A stretch of DNA of 64,000 nt, from the NCBI GenBank assembly GCA_965113315.1, contig OZ220368.1. One strand, given 5' to 3'. The position numbers and the translations under genes were made by a program. The number at the start of each line of letters is the position of its first letter. The first letter of the stretch is position 1. Below the pieces are notes generated by a model. It was not told the origin of the DNA, ran no database searches, and worked only from the letters and a program-made list of their open reading frames with translations. This document shows, one piece after another, positions 4,000-62,851 of this stretch. This DNA comes from Podarcis vaucheri. Taxonomy: Eukaryota.

Positions 4000-4004
4000 T
4001 ATAT

Positions 4005-4101
4005 GCTGAACTCCCATCATCCCAGACCACTGACCATACTAGCTGGGATTGATAGAAACTGTGGTTCAGCAACATCTGGAGGGCCAGAATTTAGCTACCT
4101 G
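4005..4101. mobile_element. Short hAT-like squamate MITE fragment
   Basis: aactcccatcatccc...caacatctggagggcca motif, shared with copies at ~16120, 30821, 36855, 52405 and 58835. Confidence 0.55.
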
Positions 4102-4560
4102 GGCAATAAGTGATTGGTGCATAGGTGTAGGCTCCAGATCACCTGTCTCCTTAGTCCAATGGGGTCACTTGGTTTTCTGCAATCCACCAATAGTTTCTTT
4201 GCTTGCCACCACAGTGGGGCACAACAGGAAGCATTATTTCACTTGTTCAGAAGTGGGCCAATGTGTTTTCTCTTGTCCTTTCCATTCAGAGCTAAAACAA
4301 TGTCGCTTTCCCCAGTGACATTGCTACACAGCTTAACCTTGCTGTGTGACACCATGGTGCTGTCGTGTTAGCTACATGATCCCTGATATGCTGGAAATAT
4401 GTAGTTTGCAGGAAATAAAACTTAATGAATGGTGTTGAAGCAGTTTCCAGAAGGGACTGTGAACAGGACAAGATAAGCATGAAAACCTTGGAGGAAAAAA
4501 AAAAACATTTGCGGGGGGGGGGGCAGGGGAGTTCAGTCAACCATCAAGCCATTGTTTTTG

Positions 4561-4561
<1 letters not shown>

Positions 4562-4616
<55 letters not shown>
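4562..4616. repeat. (TA)n microsatellite, left flank of the Penelope palindrome
   Basis: Pure TA run read directly from the sequence. Confidence 0.98.
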
Positions 4617-4619
<3 letters not shown>

Positions 4620-4702
4620 CTTTCGTAGATTTTCACGGGTACAGGAATGCAGGTTTTGGTGTCTTCGGGTGTCTTCCCGTGTAAGAGTCGGGGTGTCTGG
4701 GC

Positions 4703-4736
4703 GACGTTTCGACGAGGTCTCACTCGTCATCTTCAG
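4703..4736 (-). ncRNA. Minimal hammerhead ribozyme core (left arm)
   Basis: The - strand reads CUGAAGA-U-GACGAG-ugagac-CUCGUC-GAAAC-GUC. Core boxes and 6-bp stem II are intact, but stem I is weak. Confidence 0.7.
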
Positions 4737-4970
4737 GCTGGTGCTTTCGGCTTCTTGTTACTGGAACAGAGCAGAATCTGGTGTTTGAGTTCCTATAAAT
4801 ACTGTTGAGGGGTGTGGTGTATAGCCTCCAACGTTCTGGGCAGAGAGGAAGTTCCTAGATTAGTGTGCCTTTTCTTCTTTTGTTCCTTAATTACTTGAGG
4901 GATATCTTGAGTGATTTCATGAGTGATATTCTGAATACCACTGGGTGGGTCATTAAGTGTAGATTAGTTG

Positions 4971-6404
4971 CTAAAGCTTTCGTGTCTTGACCTCTTGAGC
5001 TTGTGAAGAGTTTTTCTGAGAAGATGGCTGTGCTGCATTTAGTTGTGCTCTGGCTTGGCTTCGTGTATAGGGGCGAGCTGTGATTTTGTGCCTTGTGCCA
5101 GCCAGATCTGTGTAGGGATTGCAGGGGGGTGCAGCATCCGGAGGTGCCACTATAGTTTGGCTACTGGATGGAGTCTGTAATATGTCTGTGGAGAGGGTCT
5201 GGGTTTGGGTCTGGTGTGGTTGATTGGTGACGGCATTCTGTGTGCCTCTGGTTCTGGTGTCGGTTTTTGTGGGGAGGGCTAATTTCCAGATGTCTGGCAG
5301 GCGGGACGTGTCGTCACGCTTGTTCATGTTGTGAGGGTGTTTCTCTATCTCGATGGCTTCCATGATTATTCTCTTGTGGTGATGTTCCATGTTAAAGAGC
5401 AATTTGGAATCTGCAAAATTAATTTCGTGTCCTGTTTCTTTCATGCGTTGGAAAAGAGAGGAAGTTTTTTCTTCTTTTTTGACGGCATTCTTGTGTTCTG
5501 CGATACGTGCATTTATTCGTCTGTTTGTTTGTCCAATGTACGTGGCTGGGCAGACTTTGCAGGGTATTTCATAGACCCCTTGGTTTTCCAGCTGGATTTT
5601 GTCTTTTGGGTTTTTGAGGATATTGGCTATTTTTTGGTTGGTGCAGAAGGCTGTTTTGATATTGTGTTTATGGAGGATTTTGCTAATTTTGTCTGTAGTG
5701 CCCTTGATATAAGGAAGGAGGGCCATGCCATTGTTTTCTTCTGTGTCTTGGTTTTTGGGGGGTGTTTCTTTTTGGATTAGCTTAGTAACCCTGTTTTTCT
5801 GGTATCCATTGGCGATTAACACATTTGAGAGATTCTGTAACTCAGTTGTCAAGTGGTCTTTGTCAGCCAGGCGTTTGGTTCTGGAGATGAGAGTCTTGGC
5901 TACGGAGTTTATTTGTGCAGGGTGGTGGTGTGATTGTGCGTGTAAGTAGCGGTTGGTGTGTGTTTTTTTCCGGTAGATAGTGTGTCCTAGGGAGCCATCA
6001 GGTTTTTTGTAGATTAGGACGTCAAGAAAGGGGAGTTGGTTGTTGTCTTCTATTTCCATAGTGAATTGTATTTTGGGGTGTAGGCTGTTGAGATGTGTGA
6101 GGAAGCTATCTAGTTTTTCTTTCCCGTGTGGCCAAATTACAAAGGTGTCGTCAACATATCTGAGCCAAAGTTTGGGTTTGTGTTCTGACTTGTCTAAAGC
6201 ATTGGTTTCAAAGTGTTCCATGTACAAATTTGCGATGACCGGTGAGAGGGGTGATCCCATAGGTGCTCCTTCTATCTGTTTGTATCTTTGTCCATTGTGG
6301 ATGAAGTACGTGTTGGTTAGGCAGTGGTTGGTCAGGTCCAGGATGTATTTGGGGGGATTGTATTTGTTTTGGATGGCTGTCAAGGCTTCATTAATGGGCT
6401 TCAT
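4971..6404 (-). pseudogene. 5'-truncated Penelope-like RT/GIY-YIG ORF (left arm, 477 aa)
   Basis: GAPMGSPLSPVIANLYME and YVDD RT motifs, plus GVYEIPCKVCPATYIGQT endonuclease. The RT N-terminus is missing and the ATG comes from the junction. Confidence 0.92.
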
Positions 6405-6419
6405 TCACTCAAGGCTTCA

Positions 6420-7859
6420 TTCACTCAAGTACCCATTAATGAAGCCTTGACAGCCATCCAAAACAAATACAATCCCCCCAAATACATCCTGGACCTGACC
6501 AACCACTGCCTAACCAACACGTACTTCATCCACAATGGACAAAGATACAAACAGATAGAAGGAGCACCTATGGGATCACCCCTCTCACCGGTCATCGCAA
6601 ATTTGTACATGGAACACTTTGAAACCAATGCTTTAGACAAGTCAGAACACAAACCCAAACTTTGGCTCAGATATGTTGACGACACCTTTGTAATTTGGCC
6701 ACACGGGAAAGAAAAACTAGATAGCTTCCTCACACATCTCAACAGCCTACACCCCAAAATACAATTCACTATGGAAATAGAAGACAACAACCAACTCCCC
6801 TTTCTTGACGTCCTAATCTACAAAAAACCTGATGGCTCCCTAGGACACACTATCTACCGGAAAAAAACACACACCAACCGCTACTTACACGCACAATCAC
6901 ACCACCACCCTGCACAAATAAACTCCGTAGCCAAGACTCTCATCTCCAGAACCAAACGCCTGGCTGACAAAGACCACTTGACAACTGAGTTACAGAATCT
7001 CTCAAATGTGTTAATCGCCAATGGATACCATAAAAACAGGGTTACTAAGCCAATCCAAAAAGAAACACCCCCCAAAAACCAAGACACAGAAGAAAACAAT
7101 GGCATGGCCCTCCTTCCTTATATCAAGGGCACTACAGACAAAATTAGCAAAATCCTCCATAAACACAATATCAAAACAGCCTTCTGCACCAACCAAAAAA
7201 TAGCCAATATCCTCAAAAACCCAAAAGACAAAATCCAGCTGGAAAACCAAGGGGTCTATGAAATACCCTGCAAAGTCTGCCCAGCCACGTACATTGGACA
7301 AACAAACAGACGAATAAATGCACGTATCGCAGAACACAAGAATGCCGTCAAAAAAGAAGAAAAAACTTCCTCTCTTTTCCAACACATGAAAGAAACAGGA
7401 CACGAAATTAATTTTGCAGATTCCAAATTGCTCTTTAACATGGAACATCACCACAAGAGAATAATCATGGAAGCCATCGAGATAGAGAAACACCCTCACA
7501 ACATGAACAAGCGTGACGACACGTCCCGCCTGCCAGACATCTGGAAATTAGCCCTCCCCACAAAAACCGACACCAGAACCAGAGGCACACAGAATGCCGT
7601 CACCAATCAACCACACCAGACCCAAACCCAGACCCTCTCCACAGACATATTACAGACTCCATCCAGTAGCCAAACTATAGTGGCACCTCCGGATGCTGCA
7701 CCCCCCTGCAATCCCTACACAGATCTGGCTGGCACAAGGCACAAAATCACAGCTCGCCCCTATACACGAAGCCAAGCCAGAGCACAACTAAATGCAGCAC
7801 AGCCATCTTCTCAGAAAAACTCTTCACAAGCTCAAGAGGTCAAGACACGAAAGCTTTAG
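6420..7859 (+). pseudogene. 5'-truncated Penelope-like RT/GIY-YIG ORF (right arm)
   Basis: Element-derived sequence starts at FTQVP, the tail of RT motif A. YVDD is at 6672-6683, GIY-YIG at 7251-7298 and the stop at 7857-7859. The first ~30 aa of the 511-aa track ORF are antisense/junction read-through. Confidence 0.92.
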
Positions 7860-8093
7860 CAACTAATCTACACTTAATGACCCACCCAGTGGTATTCAGA
7901 ATATCACTCATGAAATCACTCAAGATATCCCTCAAGTAATTAAGGAACAAAAGAAGAAAAGGCACACTAATCTAGGAACTTCCTCTCTGCCCAGAACGTT
8001 GGAGGCTATACACCACACCCCTCAACAGTATTTATAGGAACTCAAACACCAGATTCTGCTCTGTTCCAGTAACAAGAAGCCGAAAGCACCAGC

Positions 8094-8127
8094 CTGAAGA
8101 TGACGAGTGAGACCTCGTCGAAACGTC
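8094..8127 (+). ncRNA. Minimal hammerhead ribozyme core (right arm)
   Basis: CTGAAGA 8094-8100, stem II GACGAG 8102-8107 / CTCGTC 8114-8119, GAAAC 8120-8124, GTC 8125-8127. Confidence 0.7.
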
Positions 8128-8178
8128 GCCCAGACACCCCGACTCTTACACGGGAAGACACCCGAAGACACCAAAACC

Positions 8179-8181
<3 letters not shown>

Positions 8182-8232
<51 letters not shown>
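8182..8232. repeat. (AT)n microsatellite, right flank of the Penelope palindrome
   Basis: Pure AT run read directly from the sequence. Confidence 0.98.
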
Positions 8233-8234
<2 letters not shown>

Positions 8235-9572
8235 CTTCATTCACTCATATAAGGGCAGTAATTAATACACAAATGCAAACTAGATTTTGCTATGCAGTCT
8301 AAGCAAGTCTTGTTTTCTGTTAGCTCAGCCAGTTGGAGAAGAGCATAAATGTTGGAAACATTTTTGTTTGCAAAACATGTAAATATCATACTTTCCCTCC
8401 CCTTTCCTTCCTTTTGGGGTCAGATGTTGGCCACAGAAGAAAGCATTTGCAGCCAATTAAGCCAGTTTCTCTTTTGGCAGGAGACTTCAGCTGTTCATGC
8501 CTCAGTCTTTTAAAATTGCATTGCTGTAAAAGGAGCATGGTTTTAATTACACTTATGCCATCTGTAGAACCTTTTGAGTTTAAAAGTAGGACTCTAATGT
8601 TCCATAATCCTGCATATATCTACAATCAAAATTCTATGCTTTTCCTGGCTCTTTACAATCCTTTTGTTGTCCAAATTCACAGAATAATTGCCAATACCTA
8701 ACCCTGTTCTTCTACATTAAAAACAGAAATGAAGTATGTATGGTAAAAGAAAAAGCTATGCAGCAACTTATTTGCCCCTTTCTGTTTATTTTACTATCTG
8801 CTGCTACAGGTTCACAGTTAGGTCAGCTAAGCCCAATTTTATGAAGTTTTCTCTCAGGGTATTTCCACATGAGAATTAATTCTGAAACTCACACATGCAC
8901 ATTGGGGCTTTTTGTTTCTTTGCACCATTCATATGACATCAGTGTCATCAAAATTCCATCTCTTAATCTTTAGTCATTTAATTCAAATTTATCCATTCTG
9001 TAAGAAATCTGGCAAGTATAACATATGCAATCATTGCTGGTGTGGAATCCTGTCAGCAGATTTGTTAATGGGTGATTTATCATGTGTGTGGTGGGTGGCT
9101 TCTACTGTCACAGGGCTGTGTGCATTTGCTCCTCACCTGAACACAATCCTTTTCATTTACAGCAACGCCTATAACTACTGATTGCTGCCTGCTTTGAATT
9201 ACAACACCCCAGCTAGGAGGAGCTCATGTCTCCATTTTGTCCATTGTGAAACATGATAACCCAAGGCTTTGGTTTTTTTACTCTTGCATGCATCTGGGGA
9301 TTTCTTTGGGCCTTTTGGTAAAGGAGTGCATGCACAAGTGAAGAAAGACTTATGTATGTGCCCAGAATAGGGAAAGGGGGAGGAGTGATTGAGGTGAAGG
9401 ACAAGAAACAGAAATTGGATGCCCATATTCAAGGTATTTCATGGGCATACATGAATTGGGGGGCAGGGATGGAGAGCATCAATAACCTATCTTGCAGGGG
9501 GGAAAGAACAGTGGAAGTGCCCCTGCCTCCACTTAAAAAACAAACCCAAGCATAGGAGATTATTGTCTTTAT

Positions 9573-46483: not shown

Positions 46484-46755
46484 CTGAAAAGCAAGGCTAA
46501 GCAGTTCAGACTTTGCAGGCAGCTAACACACACTGAAAGGAAACCTCAAGGGGAAACAGCTAGGAATCAGCCATGCTGCACAGAGGAACAGGGCAGACAG
46601 AGATGCCATTAACTTTTTGCTCCATAATCCGGAATCATTGGTTGTTTAGAGCCACTTATGCAGGATGCATTTCCTATGGATCCTCCGCCTCTTCCCAGAG
46701 AGTCCTTATCTCTTTTGTAAAAGCTCAAGATACCCACCGACTTGGGATAAGAGGA

Positions 46756-47085
46756 TTATAAAATATATAAAAGGATGTCACATAGAGGAGGGAGAAAGGT
46801 TGTTTTCTGCTGCTCCAGAGAAGCGGACACGGAGCAATGGATCCAAACTACAAGAAAGAAGATTCCACCTAAACATTAGGAAGAACTTCCTGACAGTAAG
46901 AGCTGTTCAACAGTGGAATTTGCTGCCAAGGAGTGTGGTGGAGTCTCCTCCTTTGGAGGTCTTTAAGCAGAGGCTTGACAACCATATGTCAGGAGTGCTC
47001 TGATGGTGTTTCCTGCTTGGCAGGGGGTTGGACTCAATGGCCCTTGTGGTCTCTTCCAACTCTATGATTCTATGATTCTATGATT
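46756..47085 (+). mobile_element. CR1 LINE, 5'-truncated, young
   Basis: ORF2 end KYIKGCH...RTRSNGSKL...RKNFLTVRAVQQWNLLP...FKQRLD, then a short UTR and an (attctatg)n tail. Confidence 0.92.
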
Positions 47086-48720: not shown

Positions 48721-49327
48721 GCTGGATGCACAGAAGGAATAACAAGTTCCTCCACCCCTCGGAAATCACCGAGGTGAGAAACCCCATAATGATGTTAAGA
48801 TTTATTTCCTGAAAAGTAATAAATAGCCAATTTTGGACTCAACATTGTTTATATGTAGTTAGGGTTTAGGGATTCCCCACCATCACAAACACACACATCG
48901 ATATGCATCACTTTTGACTTGTCAATGTTATCTTTTTTAATCCAAGACCTTATTCTTCCAACTAGGCAGTAGAGAACTTGGTTTTCAGACTTGACCAATC
49001 AGTTTCCATTCCTATGGTACTGACAAGAGGCAAATGATCTTCCACAAAGATCATTTAGCAGCAGAAGGCTGAGGTGCAGAGATGCTCTGCTGAGAGACTG
49101 AGGGTTTCCTTAAAGAAGGCAGCTCAGCCCAGCAAGAACCTAAGCCTTCTAAATCTGCATTTCTCCAATGCCAACTTCCTACCAAAGACCTTAGCAAAAT
49201 TCACTTTCAGTATCAGTACCCACATTTGCACAGCTGAGATAAAAAGAAGCAATAAGGTAATGGAAAAAAACAGCAGCAAAAGGCAATGAAAGAAACCAAG
49301 ATGCTTCCACTTCCCTCGGCTCCTTAC

Positions 49328-49495
49328 CTCCTCTTTTTCTGCACTCTCCAGATCCCTCCATTCTTCAATGGGCTGCCCCAGGTCCACCGTGTTCATGGGC
49401 ACCTTGACTTCTCCAATGATGTCATGTTTGGAGAAACGGTCAAAGTCATAGATAGCCATCACCAACGTCTTGCCACCCAGCTCCTGATATGGAAT
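49328..49495 (-). CDS. SYT2: SYT2 exon (C2A end), [56 protein letters not shown]
   Basis: AG/GT boundaries, 168 nt; Ca2+-binding YDFDRFS loop. Confidence 0.97.
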
Positions 49496-62415: not shown

Positions 62416-62851
62416 CAGGTAGGTAGCCGTGTTGTTCTGCCGTAGATGAAACAAACAAACAAAAAATTCCTTCCAGTAGCACCTTAGAGACCAACTAAGT
62501 TTGTTACAGTGGTACCTTGGGTTACACACGCTTCAGGTTACACAGTCCGCTAACCCAGAAATAGTGCTTCAGGTGAAGAACTTTGCTTCAGGATTAAGAA
62601 CAGAAATCGGGCTCCAGCGGCCTCATTAGCTAAAGTGGTGCTTCAGGTTAAGAACAGTTTCAGGTTAAGAACGGACCTCTGAAACGAATTAAGTACTTAA
62701 CCTGAGGTACCACTGTATTGGTATGAACTTTTGTGTGCATGCATACTTCTTCAGAGGTGAAGCAGTGTGCATGCACACGAAAGCTCATACCAATAACAAA
62801 CTTAGTTCCTCTCTAAGGTGCTACTGGAAGGAATTTTTTTATTTTGTTTCG
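62416..62851. mobile_element. Miniature palindromic Penelope-like remnant (two 3' ends head-to-head) with a nested MITE
   Basis: With 62507-62715 removed, the arms are reverse complements around ~62755. Each arm carries a decayed CTGAAGA-stem-GAAA core. 12-bp TSD actgctaaataa at 62404-62415 and 62852-62863. Confidence 0.8.
62507..62715. mobile_element. Tc1/mariner (Tigger-like) MITE
   Basis: TIRs cagtggtacct / aggtaccactg, with TA duplicated at 62505-62506 and 62716-62717. Confidence 0.9.

Follow-up and report, generated by a model that had tools for sequence, protein, structure and literature searches.

Head-to-head Penelope-like elements in a TA microsatellite

Insertions of Penelope-like elements (PLEs) often carry an adjacent, inverted and 5'-truncated copy of the element and a tail of 30–40 bp at one end, prefer microsatellites and cause trouble in genome assembly (PMC8557442). 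Among their inverted arrangements, head-to-head is the commonest (PMC3846280). The purified protein of the anole PLE cleaves and extends both strands of its target and prefers AT-rich DNA (Frangieh et al., PMC11167929), and it begins reverse transcription at two adjacent internal sites, the tail being the stretch that lies between them (PMC11167929). Here we describe an inverted PLE pair in a 64,000-nucleotide stretch of Podarcis vaucheri DNA (assembly GCA_965113315.1, contig OZ220368.1; the whole stretch is called the window below), where it occupies, together with the TA repeats on either side, positions 4562–8232. The locus is an ordinary case of the known PLE layout, well preserved, long-armed and young, and gave no evidence of a host function. 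It probably goes back to a single, recent and dead-on-arrival insertion of a canonical endonuclease-bearing PLE into (TA)n, in which both cut strands of the target primed reverse transcription.

Tandem Repeats Finder (TRF) places (TA)27.5 at 4562–4616 and (AT)25.5 at 8182–8232, and these runs bracket two inverted arms of 1752 nucleotides (nt) each (4647–6398 and 6432–8183), which a repeat search finds separated by 33 nt. Compared base by base, the arms are 99.83% identical; their three mismatches, at 5446/7384 (a CpG transition), 5779/7051 and 5799/7031, each alter an amino acid. The left arm (4647–6398) reads on the minus strand and the right arm on the plus strand, so that their 3' ends are directed outward in a head-to-head arrangement. 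Between the left TA run and the sequence shared by the arms lie 30 additional nt (4617–4646, minus strand), a tail of further 3' element sequence that the right arm does not have. The original prediction had described the 1752-bp arms, their TA flanks, the outward 3' ends and the left extension of about 30 nt, all of which are borne out by the repeat search, by TRF and by the sequence itself. Its 33-nt spacer stands as the gap between the mirrored arms but not as filler, because 12 of these nt belong to the right arm, which thus spans 6420–8183 and leaves a true filler of 21 nt. An (AT)25 run remains at 8184–8232; we presume that the left and right runs, which represent the target microsatellite, served as primers for the left and right arm, respectively. 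The overall product is a 3.6-kb near-palindrome that contains no intact open reading frame (ORF). Searches of the 64-kb window with blastn and tblastn found no further copies of the same PLE family.

Both arms encode, within one ORF, a reverse transcriptase (RT) domain followed by a GIY-YIG endonuclease domain. The open frame extends over about 475 codons per arm, with the stop codon of the right arm at 7857–7859. The Pfam match to RVT_1 (E-value 1e-8) covers profile positions 101–175, that is only the C-terminal half of the domain, because the arms are 5'-truncated. The match to GIY-YIG (E-value 5e-4) maps to residues 274–314 in both arms and, at 20.7–20.9 bits, falls under the cut-off of 22.6. 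By eye, the arm ORF is collinear with the translation of Poseidon_Ac (PAc), the PLE consensus of the anole Anolis carolinensis printed in the supplement of PMC11167929, along the motifs FDVVSLFT(K/Q)VP, RYVDDTF, LPYIKGTTD and GVY.IPC...YIG.T, and the GVYEIPC..YIGQT of the arms resembles the GIY-YIG motif of Poseidon_Ac (GVYRIPC..YIGTT). In this by-eye comparison only about half of the residues match, and the element may belong to either the Poseidon or the Neptune clade. Poseidon_Ac also has the same organization, a single ORF with RT and C-terminal GIY-YIG and a start codon inside a hammerhead-like core. The combination of RT and GIY-YIG in one ORF, a tail on one arm, a TA target and a head-to-head arrangement thus bears out the Penelope-like identity proposed earlier. 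Since both ORFs are devoid of the N-terminal domain and of the RT motifs upstream of FTQVP, this copy is unable to transpose by itself. The filler supplies an in-frame ATG (6402–6404, minus strand) to the truncated left-arm ORF, giving 477 codons (4971–6404), and the right arm has no such ATG. The gain is probably accidental and carries no evident meaning.

Past the stop codon, the 3' region contains CUGAAGA, a 6-bp helix II (GACGAG/CUCGUC) and GAAAC-GUC. These form a putative core at 8094–8127 (plus strand) in the right arm, as judged from the sequence, the predicted helix II and the layout of Poseidon_Ac, and it is mirrored at 4703–4736 (minus strand) in the left arm, where the two arms are identical. 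The start codon of the next unit (ATG 8100 and ATG 4730, respectively) lies inside it. In the anole element, the ORF begins at helix II and the cut site follows 26 nt past the start codon (PMC11167929). Helix I of the core measures only about 2 bp, and an RNA fold prediction of 8060–8183 gave a z-score of −0.05, with the helix II hairpin as the sole stable element. The exact hammerhead strings were also searched in the supplement of PMC11167929 and not found there. Given the very short helix I and the silence of Rfam (see below), we term the motif hammerhead-like.

The 3' region of the arms holds the first 28 codons of the next unit's ORF, and the tail extends these to 38 in the left arm (ORF 4533–4730, minus strand). 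Counted from ATG 8100, the right arm terminates 82–84 nt into this ORF; counted from ATG 4730, the left arm terminates 112–114 nt into it. These positions are given as ranges because AT is common to the element and the microsatellite. For the anole PLE, the most frequent start of reverse transcription lies 111–118 nt into the ORF (PMC11167929), so the left outer end of the locus matches the start region determined in vitro, and the two outer ends are separated by one tail length. Each arm is therefore a 5'-truncated PLE copy whose end lies just inside the following unit's ORF in a tandem transcript, as is usual for PLE insertions. The tail-less end recurs elsewhere: contigs and reads of three runs contain matches that start at 4647 behind (AT)n, part of which must stem from the right junction of the studied locus itself, and the consensus from run X7 bears a different flank at this end, AATTTCGAAT(AT)n. 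Together these indicate that insertions of the family have ended at the tail-less position, and in TA targets, more than once.

In its overall plan, the locus resembles PLEs of the Penelope/Poseidon type, with ends at about 80 and about 112 nt into the next ORF, an AT-rich or microsatellite target, a head-to-head 5'-truncated partner, and a very high number of near-identical copies. Compared with canonical PLEs, it contains neither a full-length nor a tandem unit, and its two partners break off at almost the same place in the RT domain. Penelope of D. virilis and Pen2a of A. vaga, in which an inverted pseudo long terminal repeat (pLTR) adjoins a pLTR-ORF-pLTR unit, share with it the head-to-head junction and the tail on one inverted end. 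In Pen2a, the inverted part and the direct part that it faces are near-equal (181 versus 218 bp, with a 15-bp overlap; PMC3846280), whereas the facing parts at our locus measure 1.75 kb, reach into the ORF and are followed by no complete unit. The suggestion in the original prediction that so long an inversion is unusual is unsupported, inverted 5'-truncated copies being a regular feature of PLEs (PMC8557442, PMC3846280).

The central junction and its filler

The arms meet asymmetrically at the center. Other copies of the family, seen as loose ends of contigs and reads, begin to match at 6420 and carry ...GAGCTTCGATGTTGTATCTCTC just upstream, which reads in frame as S-F-D-V-V-S-L immediately before F-T-Q-V-P. 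Positions 6420–6431 are TTCACTCAAGTA and encode the F-T-Q-V of the RT motif FDVVSLFT(K/Q)VP, which is also present in Poseidon_Ac. The right arm thus begins at 6420, and the filler, CTTCATTCACTCAAGGCTTCA, is confined to the 21 nt of 6399–6419, its left limit being set by the comparison of the arms and its right limit by the reads of other copies. As a result, the inner ends are unequal, with the right arm extending 12 nt farther at the center than the left.

Upon close examination, the filler proved to be internally structured and to share sequence with the flank. TRF detects a 16-nt unit repeated 2.1 times at 6397–6429, comprising the filler and neighboring bases. The 13-mer CTTCATTCACTCA begins at 6399 and again at 6415, and it occurs a third time at 8235–8247 (plus strand), three nt past the right TA run. 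A scan allowing one mismatch returned these 3 matches against a mean of 0.23 in shuffled sequence, and 0 of 100 shuffles reached 3. The filler can also be tiled with element sequence, in the order antisense 6397–6405, sense 6404–6413, antisense 6409–6421 and sense from 6420, with overlaps of 2–5 nt. We nevertheless rejected a filler built from the element alone: the pieces tile the sequence, yet the 13-mer identity with 8235–8247 stays unaccounted for.

Formation of the inverted pair

Because the outer ends differ by a canonical tail, and 12 nt of element sequence are present in the right arm only, neither arm is a plain copy of the other. The unequal outer ends and these 12 nt, which the left arm could not have templated, are better read as the outcome of two RNA-templated syntheses, one per DNA strand. 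We infer that both strands primed in a single event, because the arms show just 3 differences in 1752 nt, no host or TA DNA lies between them, and a second pair in the window sits inside one target duplication. This second head-to-head PLE pair, which belongs to a different family, occupies 62416–62851 within a 12-bp target duplication, ACTGCTAAATAA (62404 and 62852). Its arms are separated by the 4-nt spacer GAGG, and a tail of about 32 nt is found on the left arm only. Its enclosure by one target duplication indicates that such pairs can arise in a single event.

In the course of events that we propose, both cut DNA strands would prime reverse transcription. The top strand would prime at the downstream start site of the element RNA, yielding the left arm with its tail, and the bottom strand would prime at the upstream start site, 30 nt away, yielding the tail-less right arm. 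After about 1.76 kb of RNA, both cDNAs would halt at points no more than 12 nt apart, and short template switches, the order of which we likewise infer, would then join them and leave the 21-nt filler behind. The end of the right-arm cDNA (...TGAGTGAA) would have 8 nt in common with the flank, and 5 more nt (TGAAG) may have been copied from the flank; this cycle would have run a second time, or slippage would have doubled its product, and an end-to-end joining of the two cDNAs would have followed. Each cDNA would serve as the template for the second strand of the other.

A comparable two-strand model exists for L1, in which, according to the twin priming scheme credited to Ostertag and Kazazian in 2001, both cut target strands reportedly prime reverse transcription and the cDNAs are joined via microhomology. 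There, the second primer anneals inside the RNA, so that the segments represent different regions of the element. At our locus, by contrast, each arm starts from a 3' start site of the element itself, and the 1752 nt covered are the same in both, so that a palindrome results. The locus therefore does not qualify as an L1-type twin-priming inversion, as the arms do not represent abutting parts. A rival to our proposal is a snap-back, in which a single cDNA folds back as its own primer and is copied by the RT as far as the target, so that no second RNA-templated synthesis is needed. Self-priming by palindromes at inverted junctions was proposed by Arkhipova et al. (PMC3846280), the junction at our locus is near-symmetric, and an 8-nt palindrome, CATTAATG, lies at 6389–6396, 2 nt from the inner end of the left arm. 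As a fold-back axis, this octamer was considered and dismissed, since each arm contains it once, such octamers occur 7 times per arm, and the chance of finding one near the junction is about 12%. A snap-back also predicts equal outer ends, and an inner end at which only a loop stays unpaired, at odds with a 30-nt tail on one end and a canonical tail-less terminus on the other, and the first 12 nt of the right arm (TTCACTCAAGTA, encoding F-T-Q-V) are element sequence that has no complement in the left arm. Of the two routes named in the original prediction, one event primed on both strands thus fits the locus, and plain fold-back of a cDNA fails on the unequal outer ends and the 12 unmatched element nt. 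We regard a snap-back as unlikely.

The inverted partner could also have been added at the DNA level after insertion, by replication template switching or by break repair with templated insertions that duplicated one 5'-truncated copy. Such a history would account for the filler: short alternating pieces with overlaps of 2–5 nt, a 16-nt tandem duplication and a 13-mer that also occurs in DNA about 1.8 kb away are what microhomology-mediated repair typically leaves. It would require, though, that the new arm stop exactly at the canonical tail-less terminus and acquire a TA run of its own, and the same blueprint recurs at many loci of the genome (the joints described below) and inside a single target duplication at 62.4–62.9 kb; we consider it very unlikely. 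Least probable, in our assessment, is that two copies of the family inserted separately into a single TA microsatellite, or that the assembly contains a fold-back artefact. TA runs are hot targets for this PLE family, as two insertions would have it, but the inner ends lie no more than 12 nt apart, for which we calculate a chance of about 1% if two copies are truncated independently over an element of about 3 kb; no TA or host DNA was left between the arms, and they differ at only 3 positions. PLE structures are known to trouble assemblers (PMC8557442), and the missing spanning read (see below) would suit an artefact. An artefact would predict identical arms at a contig end with no independent second flank, contrary to the 3 mismatches, the one-sided tail, the 12-nt offset, the structured filler and the two distinct unique flanks, both of which are present in run X1.

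Several points weigh against the single insertion primed on both strands. With TA repeats at both ends, the locus allows no target duplication to be read. There is no reason to expect two independently made cDNAs to end only 12 nt apart, and a coupling mechanism, at present hypothetical, must be added. The 13-mer common to filler and flank has an ambiguous origin: the flank may have been the template, or the event may itself have produced the flank copy. Neither a read nor a contig runs from flank to flank through both arms and the center; the Logan contigs end in the TA runs, and none of the listed read or contig pieces covers the filler at 6399–6419. Furthermore, an Rfam scan of 4000–9000 at E ≤ 1 scored no hammerhead family.

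We tentatively suggest, as a possibility that we hold to be rather doubtful, that priming on both strands took the form of leader-follower reverse transcription, with the two target strands priming on one RNA molecule, each at one of two adjacent start sites. The follower, starting downstream and hence tailed, would displace the leader cDNA, stall about one enzyme footprint behind it (here 12 nt) and then switch to the 3' end of the displaced leader cDNA. Consistent with this scheme, it is the tailed arm that falls short at the center of the studied locus. If true, leader-follower synthesis would account for both the near-symmetric head-to-head junctions of PLEs and the presence of a tail on one end only, and starts in successive units of a tandem RNA would yield the classic layout of an inverted pLTR followed by pLTR-ORF-pLTR. 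The PLE integration cycle is still unsolved, and the locus documents it cleanly, with one arm per start position, a 12-nt offset and a filler that shares sequence with the flank. Modest as they are, the details of its junction can serve as a clue to the mechanism, and genome-wide footprints could separate a snap-back from two-strand priming.

In many contigs (from X1, X7 and X5), an antisense 3' end is joined to a sense 3' end near mirror positions (4647–4810 / 8020–8183). Examples of such mirror joints are 4764>8071, 4759>8072, 4803>8028 and 5761>7081, and some are shared by two samples or organisms. By our arithmetic, the mirror offset of these antisense-to-sense joints in other copies is at most 15 nt in 14 of 15 cases in one joint table, and in 22 of 26 when a second table is included. 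Such near-symmetry would agree with leader-follower synthesis, but as the joints come from short contigs and some may be library fold-back chimeras, these counts are a lead rather than a result. The joints suggest that short head-to-head pairs of the same PLE family are numerous, with library chimeras remaining a possible source.

Abundance, age and genomic surroundings

Both unique flanks of the locus are present in run X1 with no differences, and X7, another sample of that organism, also contains the right flank. The word depth in X1 rises from about 40 on the unique flanks to about 1e5 over the element. The PLE family is therefore very abundant, the summed word depth not being a copy number. 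Runs of six organisms contain at least half of the sampled words of a 4.2-kb stretch that is mostly element. The ratio of observed to expected CpG is 0.49 in the arm and 0.24 in the flanks, which, together with the arm divergence of 0.17%, indicates a recent insertion. Assuming about 1e-9 substitutions per site per year and ignoring gene conversion between the arms, its age would be under about 1 million years.

An RNA transcribed across both arms would form a hairpin of about 1.75 kb. The original prediction had drawn attention to this double-stranded RNA, and as a matter of physics its reasoning is sound; it is no sign of a role. PLE families of one rotifer yield antisense small RNAs, which makes the further suggestion of the original prediction, a possible substrate for endogenous small interfering RNAs or for ADAR, a reasonable one. 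Loci that produce endogenous small interfering RNAs from hairpin RNA (inverted repeats) share with our locus a long near-perfect inverted repeat and a short loop, a likeness that is structural only. Were a hairpin-RNA role true, it would matter for the self-silencing of the PLE family; nothing in the present data supports such a role. Sub-threshold microRNA-type matches in Rfam were dismissed as trivial, as they fit only the palindrome center and the TA runs. In RNA run X23, which carries another species label, the mismatches are transitions in near-equal numbers (A>G 18, T>C 18, C>T 16, G>A 17), most of which recur in DNA run X5. We saw no signal of editing in the X23 reads, which match the family rather than the locus and most of which fit both arms; a DNA run of X23's species showed neither flank at 95% likeness. 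X23 reads leave the element at 4737–4739, near the hammerhead-like core and its ATG, with two different continuations (5 and 7 reads) that could be chimeric or spliced transcripts, or reflect other insertion contexts.

The left arm of the second pair at 62.4–62.9 kb contains a later, nested insertion of 209 bp (62507–62715) that resembles a short interspersed element and shows inverted ends (CAGTGGTACC...GGTACCACTG) and repeated CTTCAGGTTAAGAAC motifs. An ORF at 46665–47003 (plus strand) ends in ...RAVQQWNLLPRSVVESPPLEVFKQRLDNHMSGVL, which we take to be the C-terminus of ORF2 of a CR1-type long interspersed element, as is typical of reptiles and birds; it had no Pfam hit.

The original prediction had placed the pair within PPP1R12B, a putative setting; a regular-expression search for ankyrin-repeat exons found none. 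On the minus strand, an open frame at 49124–49465 contains a C2-domain exon (Pfam C2, E-value 5e-6) that is synaptotagmin-like and resembles a C2A exon. The minus strand of the window thus looks likely to carry a synaptotagmin gene, judging from this one exon, which would fit the SYT2-PPP1R12B neighborhood of vertebrates.

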